This document shows, one piece after another, positions 33,009-63,614 of a stretch of DNA of 64,000 nucleotides (positions are counted from its first letter, which is position 1; each line of letters opens with the position of its first letter). A program made the translations under genes and the position numbers. This stretch comes from Styela clava (taxonomy: Eukaryota): NCBI RefSeq assembly GCF_964204865.1, contig NC_135256.1, positions 14,756,001 through 14,820,000 on the forward strand, given 5' to 3'. A model generated the notes under the pieces. It saw only the letters and a list, made by a program, of their open reading frames with translations. It searched no databases and was not told the DNA's origin.

Positions 33009-33641
33009 ATGAACGCATCACCCAGAACAACGACATTGGTCAGCACTACTATCGTTACATCGACTTCGTCTGATTCTGGTTCATCTTTAAATGGTTTCCA
33101 ATGGTATGAAATCATTGGACCATTGATTGGACTTGTGTTCTTGGTTGCCATATTTTTGGCGTTTTGTAAATGCGTTATCGAGATTTGTAAAGAAGGTATA
33201 TATTCACGCCAGCAAGACCAAGCCGCGGCTCAATCACGTAATCAAGTTGGTGCTAGCAATGGTTCGTGTGATGTCGAGGATCTTCCGCCAAGGTATTCCA
33301 CGTCTGGGATTGCAACAATAGATTTGGAAAATAATATCATCTTAGAAACTGAAGCGGAAAGACGACGCCGGGAAAGAAGAAAACAAGTCATGGGCCCAGA
33401 AGATAAATTGCCAACGTATTCTGAAATTATTGAAGAAAATCGTAAGAAATCTGCCAACGATAAACTTGAAGGCGAAAACCCGGTTTTTAATCCGGACGAA
33501 CTTGACGTTCGATCTTTACCTAACATTCAAGAGGACGACACCAGTGAAGATGCTGTGTTCGAACATGAGCCGGATCAAGTTAGCGTCATTTCTGAAACGG
33601 ACTTGTCTCCCCCACCTCCATATACATCAGTAAATACATGA
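33009..33641 (+). CDS. Single-pass membrane protein with three PY motifs (210 aa), no signal peptide
   Basis: Thr/Ser-rich N-terminus, TM IIGPLIGLVFLVAIFLAF, juxtamembrane CKC..C, then PPRY, LPTYSEI, PPPPY in an acidic tail. Confidence 0.85.
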   Translation: MNASPRTTTLVSTTIVTSTSSDSGSSLNGFQWYEIIGPLIGLVFLVAIFLAFCKCVIEICKEGIYSRQQDQAAAQSRNQVGASNGSCDVEDLPPRYSTSGIATIDLENNIILETEAERRRRERRKQVMGPEDKLPTYSEIIEENRKKSANDKLEGENPVFNPDELDVRSLPNIQEDDTSEDAVFEHEPDQVSVISETDLSPPPPYTSVNT

Positions 33642-34975
33642 AATCTTCAGTTTAACAAGATGAACAAAATGATTCGTTTTATTCGAATATGCGCAGCGAG
33701 ATATATAAGAACAAGAGGGGAAAACTTAATATCAATGAGCGATAGTTTAGGTATGGACTGAGATATTGAGCTAACAAATAACTCTCGATAAAATATGCTA
33801 CGATAAGATATTTTCCGGTCACGCACACTTTCTGCGAATTACTTCATATAATTTTTTTTTTTGCTTGCAAGTATGAAACGCATCTTATCAATGTCGTGGC
33901 TTATCTTGAATCGAAGTATTTCGAATGTCCGAGCGTTTGCAAATTGATACACGAATTTACTTTCAATATTGTTATTTACTGGGTTTATATTTCGGAACTA
34001 AACACCTATAATAAACCAAGTATATCGCGGCGAAAATAAGTGCATTTTCTGCAAATATCTTAGTAAAATGTACTTTTATCATTCAAAGAAGTGATTAATA
34101 TGCAGTGGTTGACCTTTACAAACCATAGGTCAAATGCTCACCAATTCCATTTATTTAGAGTGCTATTCTATTACTTTTACACTTCAATTTAGTGCTAAGC
34201 ATGTGCCTTATATATATATATATATACTTGATTTAGTAATGCATTTACTACTAAATCTGTATGGCTGTTTGCCCCTTTTCACCTTTATTACACTCTTTTT
34301 GTTTTCACTATACTATTGTGCTCTTCAAAGCTATAGTCCTTTCACAGATTTATGAACCATGTTCAACTCTGGCCTAAATGCCTAATCCTACTATTTTTTA
34401 TTTATTTATTTCATATCTTGCCAAATATTGTTGAAATATTTTTGTAATAAAATACTGTCATTGTGAAACAACGTCGCGTCATTTTTGTACATTGTCTTTT
34501 AGCGAATGGGTTCACATGAAATTAGACGATCAAGTTTCGATTGTAACTATAATAAATCAATTTGATGTGACACAGTGACACGACTAAGAATCGGAAGAAA
34601 TTAAAACACCATGAAATACTTCGATCATATTGATCATATTTGCTTCACGCGGATCCGATAGAGTATGCGCCAACGCCCAATTTTCAATTTGTCGCTGTGT
34701 GCATATTTTCATTCCAAATTGTTCGTCCTGATTCGGGTGAATCCAACCCGACCAAAATTGGGATTCCTCTCAAAAAAATTATCAATTATCTTTGTAGGCC
34801 TAAAAATGCAAATCTGTATGAGCACAATAAAAAAGTAACATTGCTGTTGTTCGTTTTCACTTGCTATATTTTATACTGAATTGTGTCTACTTTGTTGTTT
34901 AGATTTTAACTAAATGTGAAGTGTATTGTTTCAAATGCAATAGCGCATGACCACTCGTCCCAATTTGGTCATAAC

Positions 34976-35509
34976 ATGGTGAATGCTCTAGATATATCTG
35001 CAGCATTATTCATCAGTTTGGGGTTGATAACTATATTCATTTGGATATTTTTATCCGTGTGGGATCGCATAAAATGCTGCGGCACAAATCCTCTTGATTG
35101 TTGTCGTGGAAATATCGATGGCGTAAGAGATACAAGGTCAAGTGTGAGGTGAAATTTAAAAATTCATTGTAATATGTATATATAATGTTACAAAGTGCTT
35201 TCTTTCATTAAGTACTGCTATTTCATTTTGTGTTTTATATTCCACATCATACATTTTAGTGGTTCAGCAGAAATATTCAGCGTTACGACAGGCAATCTTA
35301 GTGAAGTTTGGGAAAACAATCCTCCATCTTATTCCTCACTTGAAGGAGATTTTTCAACCTGGATCATTGAAATTGATGAGATAAACGATACTGAAACTCT
35401 AGAAGAAAAAGATGAACAGTCGGACGAACTACCAACGTATAACGATGTAGTAAGCGAAACACAAACATATTCAAATAGAAGCGCAGTTGACGATGATGCA
35501 ATCAAGTGA
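34976..35509 (+). CDS. Small single-pass PY-motif membrane protein (exons 34976-35148, 35260-35509)
   Basis: TM AALFISLGLITIFIWIFLSVW, CC...CC, phase-2 GT-AG intron, PPSYSSL and LPTYNDV in an acidic tail. Confidence 0.8.
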
Positions 35510-38500
35510 AAAATTATTACCGTGAAAAATATCGTAGCCTGCTATGCAATGGATTTCATGATGTCATTTCTTATTCAAATGGTGGAACAACGAAAAAGCG
35601 TTTTATTCCACCTGATCTTGGGAATCTGGTCAAAATATTCAGTTGAAGTCTAGACACCTCGGCGAGATATATATTTGACTTTAAAGATAAAAACTTATTC
35701 GGATGTTATGGAAATTCGTTTTTCTGTGGCTGATTTGTAATCATTAATTAACTGCAATTTCAAGATCATTATAGTTTGTATGTATATTGTTGGGCAATCG
35801 CTTCTTGTTATAGATTCACATCAATGTTTCAGAGTTTCGTACAACTATCCGATGTAACAACGTTTCTATAAACAACTATGCTGAACAAGATATGATACTT
35901 TTACCAAATTTGATTTTCATATTAAGCAAGAAATAAAGCATTTTGCTAAAATGTCTTTCAATTCATTGCCTATTGTGTAAGCTTTACAGCAATGTTGTGT
36001 GCTAAAATGTTCTACAACAAACCAGTGCACCTTCTTATATAATTTATATAATGCACAAAATAGTCAAATTAGTTTTCAATTCTTTAAATTAAATTTTTAA
36101 TGTCAATTTTTTTACATTTTTATACAATTTCCCAAAGCATCATTTTATTAACTTTATATAATAACTAAAGAACATAACATGACCGTGCTGTGATAGTTCA
36201 GTTATTATATAAACTATAATGTTGGAAGTACTATGTATGCTTAAAAACTGATAAATTGTGTTACCTAGTAGTTGAGTATCATGTCAATTGACATGCATTA
36301 TATCCATTTGTTTGAGCCAATAACGATCAATGATTAAGTATTATTTTTATATCTATGTACTACATCTTTCCTTTTTTATGACGCTGTTAAAATTATATAT
36401 TTACTTTTATGCTATCACTTTGTTCAAAACATAAAAAAATAAAGGTGAGAAAAATGCAAAATAAATCTCTTTCTCTATGTATTATATTTTTCAAATTACA
36501 GTATTCTTATTACAATAATATAATATATGGCATATAAGATTAAGCGAATTGTGCAACAAATCAAACAAAATTATTTTCATGGTATGTTTTAAATTGTATT
36601 GACTCGGTGGCCGTTCGTGTATTCATCCATCTAGAATTTTAGAAAGGTTGATTAGTGATTGGCCCTATAATTCTTAAGCACGAAATGAATATTCGCCAAT
36701 TAGTCAACCGGAGCCAAACCCAATCATCAAAATAATGTCGAATGGTAGTACTGGGAATAGATTAAGATATTTGTGTAAGAAGCTGTACAACAGAAATTAA
36801 AAAAAAAGGGAAACAAATACAAAATAAAAAAAAACAAAATAGTATTATAGGTTCAATACGTTGACTACTAGCATCCTTGGCAAAAAAATCAACTCTCAAT
36901 AAAAAACGACCCTGCAATTTTCATTTTTTATGAAATGGCAAACACTTTTCAAAATTCAAAATTACAATATCGATTAACAGTTTTGAACATTGTAAAATAT
37001 TTCAATTTAAGGATACCTGTTTTGAGGTGGTTAGTTTGTTTCTGGGCAACATGAAAGCTGTACAACAAATAATCCTGCTCCAAACTATTTTGCTAATAGT
37101 CTTCTGTAATAGGAATCAAATAAAGGCAAATAGTTGTGATTGTGATATGCTGATTGCTATTTGTTTTTCGAATCCAAATTAAAACCTAAAGTAATCAAAG
37201 AAATATATGGCTTTATTAGTGGAATCATGGTATAATGCAGCTATTTTAGTCACTCATGCTCCACTGAAGCTCTGAAAACTTAGTCAATATCGCACAAAAC
37301 GTACAACGAATCAAAAATATTCAATATCGCTAATAAAGGAATTAAAATCAGATTTCTTTATCATTCTTTCGAGATATAATTATGCATTTGTTGATGTTTG
37401 TACACATATTGAATCCAAAATACATGGGAAACACTATTTATTTGAACGTCAAGGTCTATAGAACGGAGAAAATTTGTGCTAATCAGACAATTTCAAAGAC
37501 GATGCATTTCACAGCTTTGACGGTTTATCTTATAATTATCATATACCACTCATAAAATACTATACAACATATAAAATTCATGGTACTTTACTCTTTCATT
37601 TTATGTAAATCAATGGAAATTGAGAGAGAGCAAAATTATGTAATTCATCTGCATGCTGAACAGCATGATGGGAATTTTCAGTAATGGTCCAATACTAAAT
37701 AAAAGCTATGATATAATAAATACTTCCCTATTCGAATAGAATACTAGTTCAGACTGGGTGGGGTAATTACAAAACGGTTCATATACCGACAACATCTGTA
37801 TTTAGATTAAGTAAACAATTTCGTTCAATATTTTGCATCATATGACTGGCGCGTTGGAAAACGTAAATGTTAAATTTTTTTTATACATAGTTTTAATCTG
37901 AGTTGGTTAATGTTACTGTTAGTATATAGTCATTCATCGTTCTCCAAAAATTGTCGCTATAAAGGACCGACAGAGCTAGCATATTCAGGTTTTCAATATT
38001 TGTTCTGTTCGCAATATATACCCTCCTACTTAAATCTTTGTAATCATTAACTCATAGATAGGATGGTCTGATATTTCTCATTAAAGAAGATAGAGTTTGA
38101 TGTATTGGAAGTGGTATACTTAGTTCGCTGCAACACTGGTCGTATATTTTCTCAGTATTTAATCCTAGGACAGAAACGTTATTTTCTTCACATTGTCCAG
38201 TTTTGGCGAATTTAACGTGAATGGGACGTCTGTATTGTGTAAGACAAAAACGAGTACGTTAACCTTCGTAATGATTAATTTGAGAAATGTAAATATTACT
38301 TGCGTCAGCACCATCTAATATCATATGACCTAGAAAATATCGACCAAGAGGTTGCTTCAAACACATATCGCATTTAGTTGAAATGGATTGAAATGTAGCA
38401 AGCCAAGATAAAAAGCAACCCAGTCGTTGTAAATTTGATAAAGTTTAGCAAAAGTTATAACAAAAACTTACATACTAACTAATTGTTTATTTAGTTTAGT

Positions 38501-39109: not shown

Positions 39110-42100
39110 ATGATCAAACTAACCATGTCGAACGTCACGTGCTTATTGCTGATACTTTGTATGACCAATATAAGACAAGTTTTCTCTCAATGTGCCTGCC
39201 CTTCCGGGTGTCAATGTAACGGTGCTACAGTTACATGTAACAGTGAGTAGTGTTTTGTTATTTGCTCGTTTTCTTGATTTTTGCTTGAATTTGGTTATCT
39301 TGGTTTTTCGCATAGTTCAATTTAATGTCATTTAAGTACGTCGTATACGTACGTTTTGTGTTAATGGACAGATATTGGTTAATGAATCACGGTGTCTGAT
39401 AAGATGTGCTTGTTTATAATATTGCGCACTGCTCAATGAAAAATGATGTCAACGGGTAAGGTTAACCTGATCAAGGTAGTAACTATGGTTACTTTATGTA
39501 TATATATATTCATATTAGCAAGAAACATGTTCCATGATCATTGCTTGTGATTATAAGCTATTTTTAGGAATACTGATACAAAATCTTTTTATATATATAG
39601 ATGTGACACTGGAACCCGATCTTTATTGATTCACTTATGTCATTTATATTGAGTGCGTATAGAAAACCTAGAGTAGATGTAAATCTTGTAAAAGCTGCGA
39701 TGTCATACCACGTAAATCTTCTTATCTGTGTTGGAAAATTATACAGAAACTTTAGGCACAAAAAGATGATGTAAATATGCTGAGAATTTGAAAAAATTAA
39801 ACAGTTCGTCTGAATGTTTTTTCTCGACATTTTTTCCATATTTAGACATAAAGGTTTTCCCCGAATGCCTGCCAGCGGGATCAACAAGACTTACAGTATA
39901 CAACTCAAAGAACCTGACTACAATATCCAGCATTCCCAAGGACTTAACTTACCTAGAAGTAACAGATACTAGTGTATATAGCGTGTCAAAACACGCTATC
40001 GCAGACGCTTCCATGTTACAGGTAGGTAACACTTCAGTATATATTTCATTAGTCGTTTAGTCACAAGGTCGTTTTCTTATTTAATAATTGATTATTTCAG
40101 TGACGACGATTTTTAGTTTATTTATACGTTTTGAGTGTATAGTTTTTATGATGTCTTTGAACATACGACGGCAATGACGAATTTGTAAGATAAATTGCAA
40201 TCTCAGTCGTTAGTCACGGGTAGATTCATTGACTGTGGATTTGAAATAAAAGGACATTAAACGGATAGTTTAATTAACAAAGTGAGTACTTTTAAAAAAA
40301 AATTAAAAAAAAATAGTAAAAAAGCAAATTAAGCTTGGTACTAACTTTCATTTAAACTTTCAGTGGTGGGATTCTAATTTTGTTTGTCAGCCGGTTCCAT
40401 AACAGAAGTCATATTTTTCGGCCGGTTCTGTTATATGTTTTTTTAGTAATGCTAGCCGGTTTGCTGATCTCATAAGATTCCGCGAGGCGGTTCTATAGAA
40501 CCGGTGCGAACCGGCTGAATCCCACCACTGGACCTACCCAGTACGGATTGCTATCTATTTTCATTATTGACCTGTATACCTATATTTTAAAAACACTGCA
40601 TTACCAGATTAGCCATAGAATGTTTATAATTGCACTTTTTTTTATTTATAACGAAATATATTGTCTTAGTATCATGAGTTTTTAATATTATTTTCAGACT
40701 CTGATGTTCAGTTATAACGATCAGTTAAGACAACTTGATCTAGGTGAACCGAGTGATGGTAGCCATCCATTGACAACTCTAAATCTGACGAAATGCTCAG
40801 TGCTGAGTGAAGTCGATAATGTCAAAGAATATATCAACTTGCAATTTATTACTATATCTTCCTGTAATCTTCAAGTGAGTGAAATAATCAATAGAATGAT
40901 ATTTATCACAACAGATATAGATTATTGATGCAGGCAAGAGGATGCTACATAGGGCGAGCGGCAGTAAAATAATTGTGAAGAAACCAAACTATGAATTATA
41001 TGATCAGTTATATTATATATCTTACATTGTACCTACTCAATTTGCAATGTCATATTCTTATTGAAATTTATTTATAGGAAATAGATGATGACATGTTCAA
41101 AGGACTTCGAAAAGTGAAGACACTTGATATTTCACATAACCACCGACTGGATGACATTGATCGAGATGCTTTTGAGGACTTGGACGCTTTGGAAAGTCTT
41201 AGCATGAATGATTGCTCGTTGAGGAAGCTATATTCGGAATATTTTGATAACGCCTATCATAAAAATTTGGAATACGTCAATACATTGCTAAATCCTCTTC
41301 AGTGCTATAAGATGTGTGATTTCATGCAATGGTATTGGGGACATTCAAGTTTTTTGAGTTATGCTTTTATCGGTGAGTACAGATTTCATAACAGTTTCTT
41401 ACGTTCTTTTATTTCAAAAATAGGTACGTTTTCCAGCAATACTGACCTCTCTCAATGAAACAAAATAGAACTTAACTTATGAAATTAATTGAACATATAA
41501 TTACATGCCAATATAAAAGAAAGAAATCATATAGTAAAATTCGTAGCGTCAGTGCTGAGTAAAACAACTTGGCATACAGCCTTGCTAGCTGTCTTTAACA
41601 CGTCCAGCTGATAAATGTTTAACTACTAATGTATTCATGTGTAACCCGTATAACAGACTGCAAAGTCATTTATTTTTGAAAATTATGATTTCTTACTGCT
41701 TTATGACAATTTTTCGCATTGTGTGTGCAAATTCGAGTTAGTTATTATATCAGGGTATTTTTCTTGTTTTGCAAGGTATACTATAGCCCAGTGTGACCAA
41801 CCTGCTTTCGACCGCGAACGACTGAAATCTTCGACATAGCTCGCGATCGACTGATCGGTAATAAGGTCATAAACAAAAATCAATGAATACTAAATACGCA
41901 GATAACCTCACACACGCATACAAAAATTCCACCGCTGCCAATAAGCTCGGCTTTGCGGGTGCATTCTCAATAAAATTGCCACAAAAATTTGCATTTTTAA
42001 TATTCAATTTTCTAATTTGATTATGTAATTGTACTCGGAGTAAATGTTTCATCGTGTATTTTAGATTTCATCAAATCATACATTCCAGATCTAGGGCCTG

Positions 42101-43086
42101 TCTAATTTTTAGTCGTAAGTGTTTTTAATTTCTCAAAAAACCCTAAAAAGTATCCATGTATTATTTAAACAGCGAATAATGAATATTCTCAAACCATAAA
42201 TGTTATATGTCTGCTCAAACTTCAGTATATAATTTACAATTTTCTTAAAATCCAATGTTTTGCTCGATTGGAATTAAAAACAATTGGGCATTCTGATGGC
42301 ATTGCTGCCGTTGCGAATAAAACAAACACACTGCTATGGAAGTGACACAATAACTTTGACATAGTGCAGAAATTGTTGTAGGGTTGTTTGCCAGTCAAGT
42401 CACACGATATTCTGCGAGTTCATTTCTAAAACTTGGCAGTAGTGAAACTTGCATTGGTTACGTAATAATATGCTCTATCGGGCTTTTCATATCGAATTAC
42501 TGCATGCGTATATTGTATATTGCATGTACAACATTATATTCTTCCTCTTTTAAAACACACAACAGGCGCTGTATGAAACTGGTTCAAGGCAATTATTTGA
42601 AGTATGTTAATAAATTTACCCAACCCTTGATAGCTCTTTACTTGCTTTTTAGGAAGCTGCACAATTCAAAGCTACGGAAACACGTATGTGTACATAGTTT
42701 CCGATTTAAACCGATATGAGGCAGGATGTCCAACAGCCTTCGGTGTTATCATAGGCGCAACACTTGGAGCATTTTTCTTCATCTGTATTGCAGCTTGCGT
42801 GTTTGTAGTTGTTTGTGGAATTGATTACCGGAAATATTGTTGCTTTTGTTGCAAGAGCCAGAGGAATCGAAGAAATTCTAGCGATAATAGTAGTGCCAAT
42901 CAGGATCAAGATCACACTTACGCCACGGCGTACCAGACACAAAATGAAAAGGCACATATCAACTACCCTGAAGGTGCCATGTATACTGCCGCGCCACCAA
43001 GTTACGAAGATGTCACTAAAGCCGTGGATCAAGAGCAATCTCAGTCCATAAATATACCGGAGGTGGCTTCGTCTTCTACAACTTAA
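39110..43086 (+). CDS. LRR single-pass receptor A (exons 39110-39242, 39846-40021, 40698-40874, 41078-41372, 42653-43086)
   Basis: Signal peptide, LRRNT CACPSGCQC..C, LRRs (LRKVKTLDISHN, LESLSMNDCSL), LRRCT NPLQC..MC, TM, YCCFCC, tail PPSYEDV; all splice phases match. Confidence 0.88.
40361..40530. mobile_element. 170-bp hAT-like MITE in intron 2 of receptor A
   Basis: Perfect TIR cagtggtgggattc / gaatcccaccactg; internal ccggtt repeats; no TSD recognisable. Confidence 0.7.
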
Positions 43087-44519: not shown

Positions 44520-44685
44520 GGGTAGAAAACGCTGTTCGTCCATCAACGCTAATTACAAGGACTGTTAGACTGAGGTAAGTTACATTGTCAGGCAAACTGC
44601 CTAGTGTTGTCTGTTAGATTGCCTTGGGATTCGAAGTGGAATCGATGAGTTCCAGTTTTGTTGTTCACACATTTTCTGGAATTAA
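44520..44685 (-). pseudogene. Inverted, decayed LRR exon fragment
   Basis: Minus strand reads IPENV*TTKLELIDS...*QTTLGSLPDNVTYLSL; 44567-44611 is the exact reverse complement of 47337-47381. Confidence 0.6.
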
Positions 44686-46186: not shown

Positions 46187-49100
46187 ATGATCATGCTACG
46201 GGCTGTATTTGTTACTTATCGATCTTAAGATCGGTAAGTATGTTGATAGGTATTTGTCTGTTTGTCTGTCTGTCTGTTTGTATGTTTGTCTGTTTGTCTG
46301 TTAGATGAACGCGATATCTCACGAACGCGTGGTTGAATCTGCTCCAAATTTTGCATGTGCATGCATCTTACCTCGGACCAGAAGCATATAGATTTTGGGT
46401 TAATTATGTCGTATAATTAGCGAGTTATTAACTAATTACCGATCTAAGATCGATAAGTCTGCGGTCTCCCACCGATATTCTCGTTTTAACTTTTTTGATA
46501 TTTGGAATCTGCGCTATGGCAGACGTCTGGGAGGATTGCCAACATTGTAACTGTTATAACAGCACAGCATCTTGTAACAGGAAGTTATTGCATGTTATTG
46601 CGTATAGATGTGTCGATGTACTGATACTGCTAAATTCACAACGAAAAAGTATGAAAACTCAAAAAATAGCTAATAGGACAAAAATCCTCTTAATATTATG
46701 AATAATCATCTTATCTTAAATCGTCGGCCATTAGTCAAACTTTATATACTTTTTAATCTTATATTTTTTTTGTTGGCTTCCACGCAAATATTCATAAATC
46801 GTATTGATCCATTGGGGCCCTAATATTTCTATTTGTCGAACAATAATTTTTTTAAAGCTATTCGAATTACGAATTTGTAGATATTTTATTCTCTATATAT
46901 GCAAATGGAAAGTTTTTATTGCAAAACAAGAAAACAGATGTAGAATTATAGCTTTGACCAATTTGCTTGAATGAATGATGAATGAATTTGCGTGAATGAT
47001 ATTCTCGAGATAGAACAGGAGCTGTGACAATACTTCTGGAATTTTTCTATATTTTTTTTCAATTTTATCAAAAATGAGTTTATCTTTGAACATTCTCTAG
47101 CATTTCTATACTTTCATCTTTATTTTTTTGTTTTCTCATGTTTATGGATTCACAGTTGAAAACCATCCGGAGTTGAAAACACTTTGTTGCCTAATTTTAG
47201 ACATATTTTATTTAGAATAAGCGTATGATCAAAATAAACGTTTTTATGCGTACATTTGCAATTCAGACATCACCGAAATTCCGTTCTGTATACCATCGAA
47301 TACAATTCAACTGACTATAACTGACTCCCCCAAACTGACAACACTAGGCAGTTTGCCTGACAATGTAACTTACCTCAGTCTCAACAATGTTGGTATAAAA
47401 TCTATACACGACGATGAAATTGGATGTAATACTCCGGGTAGGTGTTTGATACATAACATACATATTACATATTTGATACATTAACTATAAAAACTAAATA
47501 AAGAGTTGTAGAAATGTAACTTCATAATTAGCCTTCGTACACAAGTTCGTTCCTCCAATATACTTTGATGAATATATTTATTGTCTGCATTACAACGATA
47601 AATTCAATGGGATTCTTATTGATACTCTCGTCATATAAACATTCTTTGCTTATACTAACCGTACCATTGTTGCCCATAATCTTTGAGAATATTATTATTA
47701 GCGACTTTCTCTTGAAGATAATAAACAAAATAGAATATCCTCTTTTAGTTTTTGAAAGTGATAGCATGTGAAGATCTGGTAATAGTTGATCTCGAATATG
47801 GGTCGCACAACTGGTCTGTTTCGTTGCAAGAAATACAAATTACCAGATGTAAAAATCTTGATGTTGTATCGAATTTTGACCAAGTAAAATCTTTGGAGGT
47901 CATAACTATAACAGAAACAAATATCAAGGTATGTACGCTGGTTGAGATTTACTAACCAAACTAAAACATATTATCGTATAATGAAGCGAATTACATCTAT
48001 TTTTACGATCAAATTGGAGCAAACAAAAACAAAACTGTGCCAAATTTAAGAAGAAAAGTAAAAACCTATCTAGGATTGTAAATATACGATACGAAAAAAG
48101 CAACCTGCGTATCATTCAAAAAAATATTTCAGCAAATTGCAACCTTGGAAGAGTTACCTTATGAGGGTTATACGTGAGCGTTTCTGCATTCACAAATATG
48201 GGAAAACTAAATTCCCTATTCTATACGACATCGGCACGGAACAAATTCAATGCACAATCGAAGCATGTACTGTGTTATTAAACACGACTCAATTCAGATA
48301 AACATATAAAGTGAACCAGTGATGCAATTATAAAAAAAAAATCAGAATAGTTTTGATTTTTATTTTATTTTCTTGCAGACTATTGACGAAAATATTTTTG
48401 GAGCACTGCCCTTGTTGAAACATCTTGACATATCTCAAAACGCTCACCTCAAAGTTATGATTCAATATGCTTCAGCCAAATTGGATTCTTTAAAAACTCT
48501 TGACATAAGTGAATGCAATTTATTCACCCTCTACTCAGAGTATTTACTCACTCATAAACAAATGAATTACTATCGGTTTGGACTTCAGGAAATCCGTTTG
48601 CTGATGTGTGAGTTTACAACATGGCTTATGGGGTATCAAGGTTTTATTAATAATTCAATTTTAGGTAAATTGCTTTTATGATAGTTTTACTTTGTGCCTT
48701 AAAATACTTCATGTTGTAAGTCAAACATGCATGGTGCGACACTTGCATCAAACACGTCTTTGTATACAACAGTCGGAGGCTAACATAATTTACAACAATA
48801 ATTTAAGGTAGACGAGAAAGTAAACTTGATAAACCAAGTCAGTTCTTGAACTAGCAATATCTTTCTCAAAAAATTTCTCATCGATATTTTCTGCGCTTTT
48901 ATTAGAAAATAGATTTTGTACAAATTGTAAAATGACTTTTTTACACGATTGCGGCGATCCTTTCAGATTACCTTAGAATAAACAAGCTATAATTTCTGTT
49001 TGAGTTGGAGTTTCGGGTTAGTTGTTGGACCAACCAGACAGAATGTAACTAAAAATACTAAATATGATTATGTTGAGTGGTGTGTATATTTCCCTCGCTT

Positions 49101-49502
49101 TTTGTGATTGGCAGTTAATTTTTTCTCAATTTTTTTAGCTCACAATTGGGATATCTTTTTGTCACAGGCGACTGCTATTTTAACACCACCGAGGATTCTA
49201 TTACATATAAAGTATCAAAGTTGACAGGCCTGGAAGCAGGATGCTCATACACAAAAGCTGGTCTGATTATCGGCTGTACTTCAATATTTGTGCTTTTGTT
49301 GATAATAGCATTTTTCATTATCATATCAAAATATGATCGACAATGCAAAAAATATTGTTGCCATTGTTGCGACCGACAGAGACTTAAGAATGCTGATGAC
49401 GAAGACCACGACATGTCTGAAAGCAATTCCTCCGAGCAACAGAAAGAAAAATTAGACGGAACAACTCTGAATACACTTTCATTTCCAGAAGATAATGCAT
49501 AG
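46187..49502 (+). pseudogene. LRR receptor B, disrupted paralog of A (exons ~46187-46579, 47267-47437, 47749-47928, 48379-48664, 49168-49502)
   Basis: HINE insertion in the signal-peptide exon; exon-1 donor reads GG instead of GT; exon 2/3 phase mismatch; LRRCT 'GNPF' lies in a shifted frame; TM and KYCCHCC retained; no PY motif. Confidence 0.8.
46212..46483 (+). mobile_element. HINE/DINE-1-like element, copy B
   Basis: ttacttatcgatcttaagatcggtaagta 5' end, (TGTC)n, gatcgataagt plus 3' hairpin; inserted at a T-run without a clear TSD. Confidence 0.8.
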
Positions 49503-50678: not shown

Positions 50679-50852
50679 GGAATACTGTTCAGTTATAACG
50701 TTTGAGATAACAAAAAATCCGAGTCCAAAAATGGACAAAACGCCCCATATTTCACCTTTATACTCGGAATACTGTTCAGTTATAACGTTTGAGATAACAA
50801 AAAATCCGAGTCCAAAAATGGACAAAACGCCCCATATTTCACCTTTATACTC
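50679..50852 (+). repeat. 87-bp direct tandem duplication upstream of receptor C
   Basis: ggaatactgttcagttataacg...cacctttatactc occurs twice; single copy at about 57751 in the paralog. Confidence 0.9.
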
Positions 50853-51394
50853 GATCTTTCGATTCTATATTTGTGCTTAGTTTTGATCGTCTGTCCTGGC
50901 TGGACAAACAATCGAAGCTGACTTGCTGTTCAAAAATATTATGAAAGCGCACATCTCTGAATATTATACAACAGGTCGTCTGTATTCTATCAAACATTAA
51001 CTACGGGAGGCTGTACGAATCTGCTAAAAACAATCAGGAAATTTAATATAACTCCACGTTAAAATGTAAGGCAAAAACAGCCAAATCGGTGATTTTAGCA
51101 AAGCATGGGATACAATCAAATGGGATCCCGGGGGTACTTTATAAGTATATTACGTATTCTGCTCGACATTTATCTTATAACAATTTTTGAATTAAGCAGA
51201 AATCTTTTTATCCATGAGTTTTTGCTAAATGCATTTCGTACAAACGTAATTGTTTTACCTTATCAATTCACGTGACGAATAACTATTAACAGTTTCTCTG
51301 GAATAACTTTTTGTTGAACATAATATGCATTAGTGCAGTTGTATTTGAAATTTGCATCAAAGTAGTAGACTGTAAGTAGGCGGCTGTATTCGTT

Positions 51395-54300
51395 ATGACA
51401 AGCGTAAAAATATCGCTATGCCTCTTTGTAGTCGCTCTTTTAATCTCCATAGCAAATGGAATATTGCTTGACGCATCGGAAAAAGCTTCAAGGAAAGACG
51501 ATGACACGAATCGCCTATGTCCTGTATGCCCTGAAAATTGTGACTGTTCGGATGAATCATCGCCGGTATGCACAGGTATGTTGAGATACACATAAATATG
51601 TGTTGTGTTTCAAGCACATCGATTTATGTCCGTATTTTATTTCCTACAAATTGTGCGTTTTTAGGTCTTCCAGATGGTGTTTTGAATATGATATGAATTT
51701 TAATTATTAGACTCAATCTATGGTTACTAGGTTTTTTATTAGGATTTATTTAAAATGATATATAGAATACTGCGATCTAAGACTCATGAATTTCCTCGAC
51801 AAAGCATAATCCATTATCACAACCTTGGTTACATTGATGGGGGCTCCCGAAGTATGCAAACCAAGATGGCGGACATCGGAATGTAATATGTGTACTAGGT
51901 TAGGGTTAGGCCATAATTTTAGCTATAAATACTACGGGGGGCTCTTGGCTAGTCTTCGAACTGATTATAGGACTAAAATAAGGAAAATTGGAAAAAAATT
52001 CTCGCCTAACCCTAACCTGTTACCCATGTTACGTTCCGATGTCCGCCATCTTGGTTCGCACACTTCGGGAGCACCCATTGATGTCTACCTTGGGTAGTCT
52101 ACGGGTGACTCTAATATGCCCGAGCGTACAGCTTGTTCTTGTCATGGTTTGACCAATTTTTCATATGTTTTGTTAAAATGAAAGCTTACATTCTGTTCGT
52201 TCTATGTGGTGTTTGGTAATACACTTTTGAATTGTAATAAATTAGATAAAGTACAAGTATTGTAATCTCAACTGATCAGTGATATTTACCAATAATAAAT
52301 TTAAGCGACGCCATATTTCTATAGGCAACTGGCATAATAATTCATATTTTACTCCCACGTGCCAAAACGACATAAGGTGTTTCAATATTCTTGGCATTGG
52401 ATGGAATTGAAAACTATTATCTTTTTTTTTATAATTTGACAAATTTATCAATTTATTGAATTATTTATAAGTCTTTACAAAAACGTTATTTGTAAGAAGG
52501 TTATGGTCATCTCCATATTGACCATATCCACATTTATTTCCTACTGTATGACTAATAATCTTGAACATACATCAAAGTTGTATAAAATGAAATAATCAGT
52601 GTAAAAAATATCTGATAACATTCCATGTCTTGAGAAGTTGAAGGTTACAATAATTACTGTAATACAATCTCAAGCACAAAGATATATATGTACAGCCAGA
52701 ACTTTTTTTCAATTTTTAAAATTAACATTAATTGTTATTTTTAAAACTGAAACCTTAGAAAATATATCATCAACAGTGAATATTTGTACATAAACTTACG
52801 TGTTTTATTCAACAGATATTTTTGAAATACCAAAATGCTTTCCTGATGGTAAAGAAATAGAGAGTTTAACAGTCCTCGACTCACCCCTTTTGACGTCAAT
52901 TGATGATGAAGATGCATTCGAACGTTACGACAAAAATCTCGAAATTCTTATTTTTCGCCAAACCGGACTTGGATACGTTAACTGGGAAGCTTTTGCAAAT
53001 GTTAAGAAATTGAAGGTGACAAAAAGGCATCTTGTACATTATAGTAAATTTACCAACGTGCAATTTCTACTTGAATCCCTATACTATATTCAAATGAAAT
53101 GATTCATTCAAATGATTAGCGTTAATCATTGTTAAAGGAGAGTGACCATGATTATATATGTTCTGCGGAGATGGTGATAATTTGCGGTGTTCTTGAAAAA
53201 AAAATTATTTGTCAAAGTTATAACTAGGACCGCGATTTCACAATACTGTATGAATTTTATTAGTATCGTTTATTTACCTTTCTCAACTAACAACAAATTA
53301 TCCAAAACTTGAGTGATTTTTACGATTTCATGGTCCAATTCTTATTGACTATTTAAATTACGTTGATAACTTTGCTAATAATAAATAAGTATTATTCATG
53401 TATTGTTTATTTTTCTATACAGACACTCGAAATATCATCAAGTCGGTTGAAATGCATTGAACCGATGGATCTAAGAAATTTACAAATTCTGAATTTGTCG
53501 GGCAACAATGATTTAAAATTTTGTACAGATCAAGAATTGTTTGTGGAAATGCCTTTTTTGGAAACATTGGATTTAAGAAACTGTAGCATTCAGGTAGAAA
53601 AACTTAAAACATTGTTATTTCATTTGCACAATTTTTTTGAAAATTGAGTCGAGTTTTATTTGCGCTAATATTCGAACAAACGACTGTTTCAAGCTATGGA
53701 TTCTATACTTTGTTTTTCAAATTTTTCTTGGTATACGACGTGCTTTTTAATATCTTTCATATTTAGGGAATGTATGAATATACTTTCCGTGGACCAAATA
53801 AACTTACTTACCTGAATATGAATTTTAACAACGAACTGGAAGAAATACCTAAAGACGCCTTTTCTGATCTTTCAAGATTACAAGAGCTTCATATAAGCTA
53901 TTGCGGGTTACGAACTCTTTATCCAGAGCATTTTTCCACGGCACATAGCGATGGAAGTTTGGAATCCGTGAAAGCGATTGGTAACTGTTGGAAATGTGAA
54001 ACAATGTGCAATTTTGGAGCATGGATGGACGACAACGACGACTTTCGCGACATTTTTGATGGTGAGCGGTGCAAAACGCCAACTTATTTGAGTGACGAAT
54101 TACTTCAAAATTTGGGCGAAAGTGAGCTCTGTTACATCTACACGACTGATGCTCTCATTGTGATAGGTGCACTTTGTTTAATGATGCTAACACTTATCTG
54201 CTGTTTTGCGTTAGCTTTCAAAAACTGTTTTATCGGAATGTGTAAAAGTAGTGACGTATACAGTTCAAACCCTACTAGTCAGCAGCAATCTAATTTACGA

Positions 54301-54567
54301 AGTGCACCTCGAACAGGTCGGGCAGGCGTAGAAAACTCCGCCGCAGAGACGAACGATCACGCTATTGTTACTGTTGATGGAGCGATGTCCACTGATTCTG
54401 TTGGGGGATGGTGTATACACGATATAGATCCACCTGGCTATGACGCAGTCGTAGGAAAAAATGATGAAAACATGGATATCATGACAATGACATTGCGAAA
54501 CGCAGATGACGCAGATTCAATGACAGATGTCGCCCCACCTCCTTATGATGAACATGCTTTTGCTTAA
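51395..54567 (+). CDS. LRR single-pass receptor C (exons 51395-51575, 52816-53015, 53423-53593, 53767-54567)
   Basis: Signal peptide, LRRNT CPVCPENCDC..C, LRRs (LQILNLSGN, LETLDLRNC, LQELHISYC), LRRCT GNCWKCETMC..C..P..L..C, TM, tail PPGYDAV and PPPYDEH. Confidence 0.9.
51839..52076. mobile_element. 238-bp fold-back MITE with 6-bp TSD in intron 1 of receptor C
   Basis: Long TIRs gggggctcccgaagt...ggttagggttagg / cctaaccctaacc...acttcgggagcaccc; TSD attgat; absent from paralog D at about 58939. Confidence 0.88.
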
Positions 54568-54570
54568 GTA

Positions 54571-55567
54571 TTATTGGACACGTTTAGTGGCCATAACGAT
54601 CGTTTCAAAATTTTGTTGTTATTGTTATTGTTGTTATTTGTCTCCGTCTCCATTTTTAAAAAATCGCTTTTCTCTTCGAATACTGGACCAATTGCTTTGC
54701 AATTTTCAGTGGTTAAAGATTATTGGACACGTTTAGTGGCCATAACGATCGTTTCAAAATTTTGTTGTTATTGGACACGTTTAGTGGCCATAACGATCGT
54801 TTCAATATTATGTTGTTGTTGTTGTTCTTGTTCTTTGACACGTTTTTAAAAAATCGCTTTTCTCTTCGAATACTGGACCAATTGCTTTGAAATTTTCAGT
54901 GGTTAAAGATTAATTTCTTCGCTAGAAGGCTATTACTTTTATTTATTTCAAAATTTTGCGTGAATTCTATGAAATTTGATATTTCGTCTAAAATTTTGCT
55001 GTATTATTTTTTATCCATGGGAACACTGATTTTAGTCAGTGTCATGACTGGCTGTACGTTTTGATTCTGAAAAATTCTTGCTACTGGAAATTCAGAACTT
55101 TTTTGAGGGTACCGGTAGCGTCAAAAGTACCGGTAAAGACTGATTCGCTCTGGTCTAACGTGTCCATATATTTGTGCGTAGCTCTCTTGTTGTTATTGTT
55201 GTTATTTGTCTCCGTCTCCATTTTTAAAAAATCGCTCTTCTCTTCGAATACTGGACCAATTGCTTTGAAATTTTCAGTGGTTAAAGATTAATTTTTTCGC
55301 TAGAAGGCTATTACTTTTATTTATTTAAAAATTTTGCGTGAATTCTATGAAATTTGATATTTCGTTTAAAATTTTGCTGTATTATTTTTTATCCATGGGA
55401 ACACGGATTTTAGTCAGTGTCATGACTAACGTTTTGATTCTGCAAAATTCTTGCTACTGGAAATTCATAACTTTTTTGAGGGTACCACCGGTAGCGTCAA
55501 AGGTACCGGTACGGACTGATTCGCTCTGGTCTAACGTGTCCATATATTTGTGCGTAGCTCTCTTGTT
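54571..55567 (+). mobile_element. Tandem array of a second HINE/Helentron-like family just after the stop codon of receptor C
   Basis: subTIRs tggacacgtt / aacgtgtcca, (TTG)n microsatellite, head-to-tail partial and full copies; absent after the stop of paralog D. Confidence 0.75.
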
Positions 55568-57515: not shown

Positions 57516-58415
57516 TTCTAGTGAAAAAGGTTCAAACTACAAAAATGTTATCCGATTTAATCCGATTTAACACTTTAGCATCTTATAATAAAGTAGATAA
57601 AACATAGTTGTTATAGGCTACTTTGATTCTGTCGTGTGACGTTTCGGCTGGTTGATTTTAGCATCAATTATCAATTTGCTTGGTTGAATTTAAAAACATA
57701 GTAATAATATTCAGTTACTGTAAATCCAGTTTTAGATATCGGCGGAATTGGGAATACTGTTCAGCTAAAACGTTTGAGGTAACAAAAAACCCGAGTAGGC
57801 TACTAAAATTGACAAAACGCTTAATATTTCAACTTTATACTCGATCTTTCGTTTGAATATTTGTGCCAAGTTTTGATCGAATCTAGAGTTATGTAAACAA
57901 TAGTCTGTCCTGACTGGACAAACAATCAAAGCAGACTTACTGTTTAAAAATATTTTGAAAGCACACATTTCCGAATATTACACAACAGTTCATCTATATT
58001 CTATCAAACATTAACTACGGGAGGCTGAACGAATATGCTAAAAACAATCAGGAAATTAAATATAATTCCACGTTAAAATTTAAGGCAAAAACAGTCAAAT
58101 TGGTGATTCCAGCAAAGCATGAGACACAATCAAAGGGATCCTGGGGGTACCTCATAAGTATAGTACGTATTCTGCTCGACATTATCTTATAACAATTTTT
58201 GAATTAAGCAGAAATCTTTTTATCCATGAGTTTTTGCTAAATGCCTTTTGTACAAACTTAATTGTTTTACCTTATCAATTCTCGGGACGAATAACCATTA
58301 ACAGTTTCTTGGGAACAACTTTTTGTTGACCATATTATGCACTAGGGCTGTTGTATTTGAAATTTAGACGATCGGACAGTAGTAGACGATCGGTCTGAAA
58401 GAGTCAGTATTCGTT

Positions 58416-61409
58416 ATGACAAGCGTAAAAATATCGCTATGCTTCTTTGTATTCGCTCTCTTAATCTCCATGGCAAATGGAATATTGCCTGACGCATCGG
58501 AAAAAGCTTCAAGTAAAGACGATGACACAGATCGCCTATGTCCTGAAAATTGTGACTGTTCGGATGAAACATCGCCGGTATGCACAGGTATGTATACATA
58601 TACATAAGTATGTAGTGTGTTTCAAGCACCTCGATTGATATCAGTATTTTTTATACAAATTGTGCGTCTTTAGGGCATACAGATAGTATTATAAATTTGA
58701 TATGAATTTCAATTATTTGATCGGCTTATTTTAAGGTTGCTAGGTTTTTTCATTAGGATTTAAATGATTAAGATTAATGATAAGATTTAAATTAATATAA
58801 AATGATATATAGAATACAGTGACGTGCTATTTTTCCACACATATCTCTGACCAAGTAGGCTCCAAATTGTGACTAGTTACTGCAACCTAACCCTCGTGAA
58901 TTTCCTTGACAAAGTACATTCCTCACGACCTTGGCTACAGTGCTGTCTATCTTGGGTACCCTACAGGTGACTCTAATATGCCCGGGCGTACAGCTTTTTC
59001 TTGTCTTGGTTTGATCAATTTTTCATATCTTCTGTTAAAATGAAGGCTTACATTCTAAGTTCGTTGTATGTGTTGTTTAATAATAAACTTTGAAATTGTA
59101 AAATTCCAAGTTGATTACGAGTATTGTAATCTCAACTCATCTTGTTGATACTTTACAGTTCTTTTAGATTTAAACGACTCCATAATGCTATAGGGCAGTG
59201 GCATAATAATTCATATTTCATTTGCATGAGCCAAAACGACATAAGGTAACTGGATGGAACTAAAAATTATTACATTTCTTTATAATTTGACCAGTTTATC
59301 AATTTATTTAATTTTTTATAACACTTTTAAGAAATATTATTTGTAATAAGATTAGGGGCATCTTCATTTATTTCCTATTGTATGAGTAATAATCTTGAAC
59401 ATACATAAAAGCTGTATAAAATAAAATAATCAGTGTAAAGAATATTTGATAACATTTCATGTCTTGAGAAATTAAAGGCTGCAATATTTACTGTGATACA
59501 ATTACAAAACAACGGTATGTACAACCAGAACTTTTTTAAATTTAAATTAGCATTAATTGTAATTTTTCTAACTGAAATCTTAGATAATATGTAATCAACA
59601 GTGAATATTTGTACATAAACTTACGTGTTTTATTCAACAGACATTTCCCAAATACCAAAATACTTCCGTGATGGTAATGTAATAGAGAGTTTAACAGTAC
59701 TCGACTCACCCTGTTTGACGTCAATTAATGATGAAGATGCATTCGAACGTTATGACAGAAATCTCGAAACTCTTATTTTTCGTCAAACAGGACTTAATGT
59801 CGTTAACTGGGAAGCTTTCGCAAAAGTTAGGAAATTGAAGGTGACGAAAAGGCATTTTGTACATTATAAAAAATTTAACCATCGTACAATTTCTACTTGA
59901 ATCCCTATACTATATTCAAATAAAATGATTCATTCAATTTATTAGCGTTAAACATTGTTAAATGAGAGTGACCATGATTATATATGTTCTGCGGAGATAG
60001 TGGTGATATGGTTTGCGTGTTCTTGAAAAAAAAAATATATTTGTCAAAGTTAAAACTCGACTCGCATACCTATCCATGCCCTGTTTGAATATACCTAGGA
60101 CCGTGATTTTACAATATTGTATGAATTTATCTGTCTCGTTAATTCATCTTTCTTAACTAATGACAAATTACCCAAAATTTGAGTGATTTTCACGATTTCA
60201 TGGTCCAATTCTTATTGGCTATTTTAATTGCGTTAATAATTTTGCTAATGATATAATAAAAATGATTATAAGCTATTTTCGGTGGCACAAGTGTTCATGT
60301 GTTGTTTGTCTTTTTACAGACACTTGAAATATCATCGAGTCAGTTGAAATGCTTTGAACCGATGGATCTAAAAAATTTACAAACTCTGAATTTGTCGCGC
60401 AACAATGATTTAAAGTTTTGTACAACTCAAGAATTGTTTGTGGAAATGCCTTCCTTGGAAACATTGGATCTGAGAAATTGTAGTATTCAGGTAAAATCTT
60501 AAAAACATTTGCATTTGCACAATTTTTCTTGAGCTATTGATTTTATACTTTTATGCTTTCAATTTTTTTTTGGTATATTACGTGCTTTTTAAAACCCTTT
60601 ATATTTAGGGAATGTATGAATATATTTTCCGTGGACCAAATGCACTTACTTACCTGAATATGGATTTTAACAACAAACTGGAAGACATACCTAAATACGC
60701 CTTTTCTAATCTTTCAAGATTACAAGAACTTCATATAAGCAGCTGTGGATTACGAACTCTTTATCCAGAGCATTTTTCCACGGCATATAACGAGGGGAGT
60801 TTGAAATCCGTGATAGCAATCGGAAACTATTGGGAATGTGAAACGATGTGCAAGTTCGGAGAATGGATGGACGACAACGACGAGTTTCGCGAAATTTTTT
60901 TTGGTGGGCGCTGCGAAACGCCGACTCATTTGAATGACAAATTTCTTCGGTATTTGGGCGAAAGTGAGCTCTGTTACATCTACACATCTGATGCTATCAT
61001 TGTGATAGGTACACTTTGTTTAATGATGCTCATACTTATCTGCTGCTTCGCGTTAGCTTTTAAAAACTGTTTTATCGGAATGTGTAAAAGTAGTTCCACA
61101 TATAGGCCTAGTCGGTCCAGTCAACAGCAATCTAATTCACAAAGTAGACGTCGAACAAGTCGGGAAGGCGTAGAAAATTCCGCCGCAGAGACGGACGATC
61201 ACACTATTGTTACTGTTGATGGAGCGATGTCCGCTGATTCTGTTGGGGGATGGTGTATACACGATATAGATCCACCTGGCTATGACGCAGTCGTAGGAAA
61301 AAATAATGAAAACATGGATTTCATGCAAATGACTTTGCAAAATGCAGATGACGCAGATTCGATGACAGATATCCCTCCACCTCCATACGTTGAGCATGCT
61401 TTTGCTTAA
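58416..61409 (+). CDS. LRR single-pass receptor D (exons 58416-58587, 59641-59840, 60320-60490, 60609-61409)
   Basis: Close paralog of C with intact frame; PPGYDAV and PPPPYVEH. Confidence 0.9.
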
Positions 61410-63427
61410 GTATTATAAAAACACCCAAAACGTATGCTTAATATGTGTCGTTAATGTTAGACTTTAAGTAACTACCTAAATAAAATATTTTTAAACAATG
61501 TGCAAACCAATAGGGGTCACGCTGATGATCACTGCTTACCTCATTGCGGAGTTGCCTGTATGATATGTGGCCAGGTTTTTGATCCTGAATGACTATGTTT
61601 AGATAATATCTGACGTTTATGCATATCTTGAGGTTACAAATATTCAGCAAAAAGGCTGGTTATCAATCAATCGTGAATCAATCAATCTAGTATGGGTGTC
61701 TTCAAATACACTTTCTTAATGTTTTATTACAGAAATATTTTATTTGTTCTTCTTGTTTTTAAATAATTTTGATTTATTTTGCTATTTCATTTTGCATTAA
61801 TGCAGTATTATTATAATTAAAGTTGCTTTATTTTACTATATTTTCAGAATAATGGGAATGAAACACATTAAATGAACGTGTATCTTAAAAATTGTATCTT
61901 TACGTTATGTTGTTATATGTTATGAAAGTTATTATAGGACTCGCACTTCGAAATTTTAAGAACGCCACGGTTCTCCTGAAATAGGTTCAAACTACAAAAA
62001 TGTTATCCGATTCATGAAAGGACTTTAGTGTCTTATAATAAAGTAGATAAAACATAAAAAAGCGTTATAGGCTACTTTAATCTGTCGTGTGGCGTTTCGT
62101 ATTACACCATAACATTTACAAGGCATAGAAAACGTTGAATCAATACAACAATGTTTGCATTAATATTGATTTTTATCAAATATTAACAGAAATAATGTGA
62201 TATGCACACCTTTATGAATATGTATAATTTTCGTAATTATATTTCATTTTATGACGCCATTCTTCTTTTTATATATATTAGGAGCCCATATGTTGTGCAA
62301 ATTAGATAAAAGACAAGGGGAAAATGCTCAAATATAGGGACACGAAAGTTCAATGACTAACCGCACCACCGTTAGGACCGTATGCAACTTGCACATATCT
62401 GATCATTCAAAAGCTTTGTATAAGAATTGCAAATCAAGCCAATAATTCACATAGGCAGCGCAGCTGGGTAGTAAGCCTAAGCACCGAGCAGTTTTCGAAA
62501 AAAGCTGGGTTTGTTCTGACGTAATATACGCGATAGCGCAAAATTCGTATTAACGGTAAAGTTTCGAATGACAAATCAGAGAAACTTGAAGAGAATTTGA
62601 AAAAATAAAAGTTAGAGGTTTCGAGCGGTTTCAACCCTCTTCGTACCTGAAAACAATTAACCCCACAACAATCATAAAAATTCGGCCAAACGATCCATAG
62701 TGACATTTCTTGTCCAATAATATGACGATGGAGTCAAGTTTATTATTTGCTTGTGATTTGCGGTGTGTTGCGAAGTCTTAATCCTTTTGATTATGCGCTC
62801 ACATAAAGGATGAAATAATGCCACACCGGAGACATTTATATATCTGAACCAATTTAATTACATCTACGTGCTCCAACATCCGAACATGTATTCTGTTACT
62901 TGTTACTTGAATAATAAGGAATATAAATGTTTATACAGTATAATTAGGGTTCGTACTTATGTAACTTCATTGAAAACAGACTTTAGAAAACTATTACTTG
63001 GTGGGATGAAGATGCGATGCACGACGCAGAACGAACTCTGATGGATTACTGCACGCCCGTTTACTGTAGTTTCCTTTCGACAAAAATTTGATGATGGAAT
63101 TTTCAGAACTTTCGCTTCGTGAAATTCTATATATATATATATATATAAAGCTGATCGATTATTATGCGAACAGGAACTGACTGCATTATCCGATTATTTT
63201 GTCTCGTCATTTCTGTTGTTTTATCAATTTATTTACTCGGTAAACAGAGAAATATTTATTAGCACATTAACATTTCTACACAATTAAATATTAACAGAAG
63301 GGTGTTGGGCCACACATATCTATATTTGAACGCGAAACTACATCGCGAAGAGCTATCTAGACAAGTCAGTCATATTCGGAGATTTAGTTTTTACGGCATG
63401 CTGCCAAGAAAAATTAAAAATAGAAAT

Positions 63428-63614
63428 ATGGCATTATTAAGATTTCCAATTATTTTATTGTATGCTGCATCTCTTTCATCTATTTACTGTACAGAGAGAA
63501 AACTTGCACCTCAAGCAGTTTATCAGCAAAATCAACCCCCACAAAATTCAAGCTCTCCACCTTGCGCATGCCCAGAAGAATGCCAGTGCCTGGGACAAGT
63601 TGTTATTTGCACAG
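63428..63614 (+). CDS. First exon of LRR receptor E (gene continues beyond the window)
   Basis: Signal peptide MALLRFPIILLYAASLSSIYC, LRRNT CACPEECQCLGQVVICT, phase-1 donor at the same position as in A, C and D. Confidence 0.8.

Follow-up and report, generated by a model that had tools for sequence, protein, structure and literature searches.

How might a receptor-like surface protein with a leucine-rich repeat (LRR) ectodomain act if its cytoplasmic tail carries no TIR domain? This question is raised by a tandem gene cluster of the leathery sea squirt Styela clava, a tunicate, which lies in a stretch of 64,000 nucleotides without runs of N (C8:14,756,001-14,820,000, hereafter the window) of the 377 Mb assembly. 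The cluster comprises seven consecutive genes on the + strand, g1 to g7, which follow a transposase-like open reading frame (ORF): g1 and g2 are small single-pass genes, and g3 to g7 are five LRRNT-LRR-LRRCT-transmembrane (TM) genes. A sequence-only reading of this locus had described the products as combining a TM segment, juxtamembrane cysteines and tails with PY motifs ([P/L]PxY), a description that we confirmed for every gene except g4, which has no PY motif. The [L/P]PxY sequence is a class-I WW ligand, and TM adaptors with PY motifs (Comm, NDFIP, WBP1L, Shisa, SUSD4 and SUSD6) direct NEDD4-family ligases to surface proteins that themselves lack a PY motif. As judged from their sequences, the cluster genes fit this established class of adaptors, with the LRR ectodomain as the apparent new element.

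PY motifs in the cytoplasmic tails

The seven tails contain 12 PY motifs, spread over all genes but g4, whereas 0.11 would be expected from 20,000 composition-preserving shuffles of each tail. Conservation provides a stronger argument than this enrichment. Here and below, searches were carried out with single exons or database proteins, and joined exons were used only for frame checks, protein comparison and the ratio of nonsynonymous to synonymous substitution rates (dN/dS). An exhaustive HMMER (phmmer) search of 1.84 billion representatives with the terminal exon of g5 returned 542 hits at the level of the LRRs, and only about 10 clusters from this search, all of them unnamed or from Styela, align through the LRRCT, the TM segment and the tail. 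When members of this LRR family are compared at 25-36% identity, no columns past the juxtamembrane C327 other than P403, P404 and Y406 are conserved at 90% or more, and one LRR subfamily also retains a C-terminal PPPPY(E/D)E. In the two homologues of g1 (41-43% identity), DLPPxYST, DKLPTY(S/L)EII and PPPPY are invariant. Allelic variants in contigs of the public sequencing run X1 likewise spare the motifs, the sole change within a motif being synonymous. The earlier claim that the motifs are real stands: they are almost the sole tail residues kept in homologues at 25-43% identity, and these alignments argue that they are selectively maintained in relatives.

The conserved sequences extend beyond the core motif. 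They read (D/E)PPxY(D/E)xV in g3, g5-g7 and their homologues, DKLPTYSEII in g1 and DELPTYNDVV in g2; the LPTY form can be generalized as D(K/E)LPTY(S/N)(E/D)(I/V)(I/V), and a C-terminal PPPPY(E/D) is found in addition. This extension bears on a different explanation of the conservation, in which the element would mainly be a tyrosine signal, either YxxPhi for AP-2/AP-3 or phosphotyrosine for SH2/PTB, with the prolines secondary. YxxPhi is a ligand of AP-2 mu2, and V or I occupies Y+3 in all internal conserved motifs (YDAV, YDTV, YEDV, YSEI and YNDV). However, the two prolines (or L-P) before the tyrosine are as conserved as the tyrosine itself, and YxxPhi does not need them, while the terminal PPPPY(E/D)E has no hydrophobic residue at Y+3 (PPPYEEG, PPPYDEH). 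The functions of WW ligand and tyrosine signal are, moreover, not mutually exclusive. We consider it unlikely that a tyrosine signal is the main content of the element.

Gene models and relationships within the cluster

The product of g1 begins with a Ser/Thr-rich stub of 33 amino acids (aa) that includes an NAS site; a TM segment (residues 39-57), the cysteines CKC..C and a tail with PPRY (93), LPTY (134) and PPPY (202) follow. Its AlphaFold2 model holds a long TM helix, two short low-confidence helices and nothing else. g1 appears to be absent from the queried protein sets, because no identical sequence came back from these queries.

For g2, contigs of public sequencing runs were used to refine the start and the intron, which resulted in a product of 140 aa. 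A GT..AG joint at 35148|35260, which skips 35149-35259 and reads past an apparent stop codon of the genomic ORF, was present in contigs of both X1 and X3, runs from different studies. For g1, an X1 contig (depth 72) spans 32995-33723 and covers the whole ORF. The contig totals of runs of the X1/X3 type (56-79 Mb, compared with ~350 Mb for DNA runs) fit the guess that these runs are RNA, as does the spliced joint. In this read evidence, which covers g1 and g2, the two gene models drawn from the genome found support: g2 is transcribed and spliced, and g1 is probably expressed. A second, diverged X1 contig lies over exon 2 of g2 (35312-35635), with 12-13 differences and insertions of 1 and 2 nt; it may derive from a diverged allele or from a paralogue missing from the assembly.

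In BLASTP, g1 and g2 match collinearly over both motifs (E=1e-4), from which we take the two genes to be paralogues of each other. Elsewhere in the genome, an exon at G000:C9:18,104,855-18,105,040 (-) (L008) encodes a Thr-rich stub, a TM segment and a very dense cysteine cluster (CLSCKGRCCGNCKVFCFCC). This exon, the sole further match of the g1 profile in the genome, shows a weak similarity (E=4e-4), confined to the N-terminal half of g1. No PY motif was found within 1.4 kb downstream of it, and it was rejected as a PY paralogue of g1.

The LRR genes share a simple domain composition. Pfam assigned only LRR families (LRR_8, LRR_4 and LRR_1, with LRRNT weak) to g3, g5-g7 and their homologues, and no TIR, kinase or Ig domain. 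TIR exons of this genome lie only on C10, C2 and C5, with none on C8. Thus, the earlier observation of LRR ectodomains without TIR or kinase was upheld, and further downstream exons that might have supplied a TIR domain are missing from C8. In the AlphaFold2 model of g6, built from an 11-sequence family alignment, a signal helix precedes a solenoid of ~7-8 β-strand rungs (residues 45-300, with a confidence score, pLDDT, mostly above 85); a TM helix (307-339) includes the cysteine cluster, and the tail (341-447) has a pLDDT below 50. The tails of g3 and g5-g7 (87-119 aa) are predicted to be disordered. Cysteines stand at the cytoplasmic end of the TM segment or just past it in all seven genes (CKC..C in g1, CC..CC in g2, CCFCC in g3, C..CCHCC in g4 and CC(C)..C..C in g5-g7) and are likely sites of S-acylation.

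Of the gene models collected in Table 1, those of g3 and g5-g7 agree closely with database proteins. The translation of g3 is identical to P0116 / XP_039249791.2, and that of g6 is exactly P0151 / XP_039251081.2. The model of g5 equals the 'LRRC4B-like' P0160 in length and differs from it by 8 substitutions. g7, which continues past the window, is identical to P0005 / XP_039251075.2, a 'trophoblast glycoprotein-like' protein of 421 aa, and carries CCC..C..C, EPPSYDTV and PPPPYEE. Several near-identical g3-like RefSeq proteins exist as earlier versions (P0154, P0156 and P0157), named 'slit homolog 2-like', 'toll-like receptor 3' (a 254-aa fragment) and LOC120327540. Because the present assembly holds only one g3, these are probably haplotype duplicates of the earlier assembly, with misleading names.

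In contrast to the other LRR genes, g4 is probably a decaying copy, unless a 5' exon has gone unseen. In its first exon, no ATG stands in frame before the segment that resembles a signal peptide, and the donor reads A|GGAAGT where g3 has A|GTGAGT, with no other GT giving the phase needed. The first LRRCT cysteine is lost, and the tail stops 59 aa past the TM segment. It is this combination of a missing start codon, a lost donor, a lost LRRCT cysteine and a short tail without PY on which our assessment of g4 is based. The TM segment and the C..CCHCC cluster are retained. We also considered whether a frameshift might hide a PY motif 3' of the stop codon and rejected this, as no such motif was found downstream in any frame.

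Table 1 Coordinates of the cluster genes and neighbouring features (positions in the window)
Feature	Position	Strand	Description
g1	33009-33641	+	single-exon ORF, 210 aa
g2 exon 1	34976-35148	+	Met, TM (ALFISLGLITIFIWIFLSV), CC..CC cluster
g2 exon 2	35260-35509	+	tail with PPSY and D-E-LPTY-NDVV, then stop
g3	39110-43086	+	LRRNT-LRR-LRRCT-TM-CCFCC-PPSY, 404 aa
g3 exons (5)	39110-39242, 39846-40021, 40698-40874, 41078-41372, 42653-43086	+	canonical GT/AG
g4	46495-49502	+	g3-type LRR-TM gene
g4 exon 1	~46495-46590	+	defective
g4 exons 2-5	47267-47437, 47759-47928, 48379-48664, 49168-49502	+	open, canonical splice sites
g5	51395-54567	+	LRRNT-LRR-LRRCT-TM-CC..C..C, DPPGYDAVV and PPPYDE, 450 aa
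g5 exons (4)	51395-51575, 52816-53015, 53423-53593, 53767-54567	+	
g6	58416-61409	+	apparent recent duplicate of g5, 447 aa; CC..C..C, PPGY and PPPY
g6 exons	58416-58587, 59641-59840, 60320-60490, 60609-61409	+	
g7 exon 1	63428-63614	+	signal peptide and LRRNT; other exons past the window, last exon at L005 5857-6657
C-type lectin CRD terminal exon, 4 tandem copies	5316-5555, 12944-13186, 19860-20096, 25483-25725	+	WIGLDD...LCEKQ
hAT-type transposase-like ORF	30602-32509	+	open, 635 aa, between lectin array and g1; weak Pfam matches (DUF4371, hAT dimerisation domain)

Two subtypes of LRR genes can be distinguished: g3 and g4, with an extra intron in the LRRCT, and g5, g6 and g7. g3 is ~28% identical to g5-g7, and g4, which was compared with g3 only, is ~33-35% identical to it over exons 4-5. 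g5 and g6 share 83% aa identity, introns that are ~93% identical and a repeat unit of ~7 kb, all of which marks them as a young duplicate. A profile search found no member of this LRR-PY family in the Styela clava genome outside the cluster. The next match of the LRR profile, at C1:7.653 Mb, belongs to an ordinary LRR-TM gene, which was rejected as a further paralogue since its short tail has no PY motifs. Word-indexed searches brought up no named relative from any species but Styela clava. We read the cluster as a probably lineage-restricted tandem array in this sea squirt.

The sequence-only reading had also held that the small proteins and the LRR proteins share a tail. The pattern of TM segment, cysteines and PY motifs is indeed common to both, but homology of the tails was rejected: BLASTP and hhalign of the tail alignments align the TM segment only. 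Because nothing beyond this segment aligns, the 'shared tail' is best described as a motif pattern, and what the sequences point to is a common arrangement of TM, cysteine cluster and PY motifs, not demonstrable common descent.

Next to this stood the proposal that variable LRR ectodomains capture microbial ligands. In the g5/g6 pair, dN/dS was 0.45 overall. By region, it was 0.47 (LRRs), 0.39 (LRRCT) and 0.51 (tail), and the TM segment with its cysteines formed the most constrained part, at 0.16. The overall value indicates purifying, somewhat relaxed selection on this pair. Positive selection in the LRR region was not found in g5/g6, the sole young pair, where no region exceeded 1, and the notion of diversifying ectodomains gained no support from it. 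This notion belongs to an innate-immune explanation in which diversifying LRR ectodomains, together with PY adaptors, would deliver microbes to lysosomes in place of TLR signalling. Apart from the ratios, overall and in the LRR and LRRCT regions, this explanation has to accommodate an array of five LRR genes only, one of them decaying, small proteins that are not demonstrably related to the LRR tails, and a fold that matches neuronal adhesion modules as much as TLR or VLR. On the other side, the tandem TIR-less LRR-TM genes lie directly downstream of a C-type lectin array, and TIR-less LRR-TM genes of unknown role have been reported in Ciona (PMC12816324). Beyond the lectin neighbourhood, nothing here speaks positively for immune capture; an immune role is unsupported, and we regard this explanation as improbable. 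A broader variant appears equally doubtful to us: a co-evolving two-part system in which TIR-less LRR receptors and the g1/g2 PY adaptors would capture extracellular, possibly microbial, ligands and pass them to lysosomes via NEDD4-type ubiquitination. In such a system, palmitoylated g1/g2 might, for example, lend their PY motifs in trans to LRR partners whose tails are short. If true, a chordate that has no adaptive immunity would possess an LRR effector pathway that works without TIR domains.

Other features of the locus were noted alongside the genes. The tandem array of C-type lectin genes lies within the first 30 kb of the window, just upstream of the cluster. In its last intron, g7 holds a hAT/DUF4371-like transposase insertion, split into at least three frames (L005 3466-5413, ~3.5-5.4 kb past the window end). 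A perfect tandem repeat of 87 bp x2 lies upstream of g5 (50679-50853), and a repeat of 48 bp x2.1 lies downstream (54720-54821). Similar ORF text recurs upstream of g6 (57680-57856), which fits the ~7 kb unit of the g5/g6 duplication.

A candidate link to NEDD4-type ligases

The explanation that we favour, with somewhat better than even confidence, is that the tails recruit NEDD4-type ligases in a PY-dependent manner, so that ubiquitin would sort the protein, with whatever cargo is bound to it, into the endo-lysosomal pathway. Our model starts from type I LRR surface proteins (g3, g5, g6 and g7) and the ectodomain-less g1 and g2, anchored by a TM segment with candidate acylated cysteines. The functional content of the disordered tail would be one to three class-I WW ligands. 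Most likely, these PY motifs would be bound by the WW domains of a HECT ligase of the NEDD4 family. This would make the proteins either targets of ubiquitination in their own right or substrate adaptors for cargo held by the ectodomain or the TM segment, and protein and cargo would be routed to the endo-lysosomal pathway, as with Comm, WBP1L and SUSD4. Candidate partners are encoded in the genome, where at least three loci have HECT exons that are preceded on the same strand by WW exons (C9 7.607-7.623 Mb, C19 17.320-17.324 Mb and C18 3.543-3.564 Mb). Feature look-alikes of g1 obtained with ESM include BEAN1 and Comm clusters, which we treat as a lead.

Several points weigh against ligase recruitment, or against the evidence used for it. 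g1 and g2 have no signal peptide, and a topology with the N-terminus outside is presumed for them. That the run contigs are RNA is a guess, supported for g2 by the GT..AG joint, while g1 is intronless. Matches of the g3 tail to Pfam WBP-1 (a 'weak hit'; 16.5-19.8 bits vs a cut-off of 28.1) and of its tail exon to Commissureless (PF15957; 16.8 bits vs 27) stay below the curated cut-offs and serve as leads only; they do not place the cluster in the Shisa-like/WBP1 or Comm families, and g1 and its homologues gave no hit to PF15957. PPxY also binds other WW proteins (YAP/TAZ, WWOX, MAGI and dystrophin). Finally, conservation alone does not single out NEDD4, because the conserved Y-x-x-V/I also fits YxxPhi.

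The breadth of WW proteins leads to an alternative in which the PY motifs recruit non-ligase partners (YAP/TAZ of the Hippo pathway, WWOX, MAGI scaffolds or dystrophin-type proteins), so that the LRR proteins, as receptors for adhesion or signalling, would hold WW proteins at the membrane by sequestering or scaffolding them and would not be degradation adaptors. The same motif enrichment and conservation apply here, as PPxY is a generic class-I WW ligand; many WW exons of the genome do not adjoin HECT exons, and the ectodomain resembles neuronal adhesion LRR modules (NGL, LRRTM, Slitrk, SALM and Nogo receptor). In addition, the PY motifs of PRRG4 also bind MAGI proteins (PMC5578492). In contrast, small single-pass proteins with membrane-proximal cysteines and multiple [L/P]PxY motifs are typical of NEDD4 adaptors (PMC6991692, PMC5578492), and the acidic and hydrophobic residues past the tyrosine match the Comm-type motif. 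We thus give the recruitment of non-ligase WW proteins a low probability.

An unusual local expansion of HECT sequences was seen on C14, with five hits in long stop-free frames (~970-1030 aa) within 40 kb (G000:C14:7,681,711-7,721,091, - strand). These tandem genes were considered as expanded NEDD4 ligases and dismissed: the copy examined (L009 1206-4280) combines RCC1 repeats with HECT, is HERC-like and has no WW domain.

Relation to known LRR receptors and PY-motif adaptors

How, then, do these genes compare with known systems? By Pfam, AlphaFold2 and hydropathy, the LRR proteins have the capped LRR ectodomain and single TM segment of Toll-like receptors; the TIR domain that would complete such a receptor is missing. 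Like other capped LRR-TM proteins (NGL/LRRC4, LRRTM, Slitrk, SALM, Nogo receptor, TPBG and TLR), g3-g7 consist of LRRNT, ~7-8 LRRs, LRRCT and one TM segment; their tails lack TIR and Ig domains as well as a PDZ-binding end and, g4 aside, carry PY motifs instead. Foldseek and PDB matches are those of a generic capped extracellular LRR (NGL, Nogo receptor, LRRTM, Slitrk, SALM, LGR and TLR4-VLR), with E values from 1e-17 to 1e-8 for the best of them, confined to the LRR region and scattered over many families. HMMER, Pfam, PDB and profile searches gave no named relative through LRRCT, TM and tail, in keeping with the earlier impression that no named family fits, and phmmer, profile and PDB searches returned no one-to-one orthologue in TPBG, LRRC4B, LRRTM4 or Slit2, or in any other characterised LRR-TM family. 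The RefSeq names 'LRRC4B-like', 'LRRTM4-like', 'trophoblast glycoprotein-like', 'slit homolog 2-like' and 'TLR3' stem from generic LRR similarity. In Ciona, TIR-less LRR-TM genes have been described only as 'not canonical TLRs' (PMC12816324).

We found no report in the open-access literature of an LRR ectodomain fused to a PY adaptor tail, an architecture that the sequence-only reading had not recognised as a named family. The idea is not new in kind, as SUSD4, WBP1L, Comm and PRRG4 illustrate. SUSD6/TMPS is, like SUSD4, an ectodomain-bearing type I protein with a PPxY/LPxY tail. SUSD4 itself has a CCP ectodomain and binds NEDD4-family ligases through the PPxY and LPxY motifs of its tail; when Susd4 is lost, the activity-dependent degradation of GluA2 is misregulated (PMC7972451). 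As a type I protein with a binding ectodomain, one TM segment and a short PY tail that promotes the degradation of an associated surface protein (PMC7972451), it resembles the LRR proteins of the cluster. It differs from them in its CCP/Sushi ectodomain, where the cluster has LRRs, and there is no sequence relationship; ligase binding was shown for SUSD4 and is presumed here.

The small proteins g1 and g2 resemble the Shisa-like STMC6 transmembrane adaptors, among them WBP1L/OPAL1, WBP1, Shisa, CYYR1 and TMEM92, in that these too are small, cross the membrane once and bear several [L/P]PxY motifs. WBP1L, which carries palmitoyl and glycan modifications, has three PY motifs, binds WWP1, WWP2, ITCH and NEDD4L, and drives the ubiquitination of CXCR4 and lowers its level (PMC6991692). 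The Shisa-like extracellular C*C*CC*CC domain (PMC5578492, PMC6991692) is, however, absent from the cluster, in which the stubs of g1 and g2 have no cysteines and g3-g7 have LRR ectodomains.

Through its PY motifs, Comm assembles a Comm-Nedd4-Robo1 complex; this substrate adaptor of Nedd4 thereby directs Robo1 to lysosomes (PMC5578492, PMC10614773). The motif that is critical reads GLPSYDEAL in Comm and GLPSYEQAV in PRRG4 (PMC5578492), and this extended LPxY-acidic-hydrophobic sequence is comparable to DKLPTYSEII of g1 and DELPTYNDVV of g2, as is the presence of multiple PY motifs. Like g1 and g2, Comm is a short TM protein without a signal peptide. The cluster proteins have no Gla or propeptide-like region, no similarity to Comm or PRRG4 outside the motifs and no known link to Robo. 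These comparisons correct misleading automatic names such as 'TLR3', 'slit homolog 2-like' and 'trophoblast glycoprotein-like'. If the tails bind NEDD4-type ligases in the manner of SUSD4, WBP1L and Comm, ascidian LRR receptors would be wired directly to ubiquitin-dependent sorting, and part of the TIR-less LRR-TM genes by which 'TLR-like' annotations are inflated in tunicates (PMC12816324) would gain a concrete function that can be tested.

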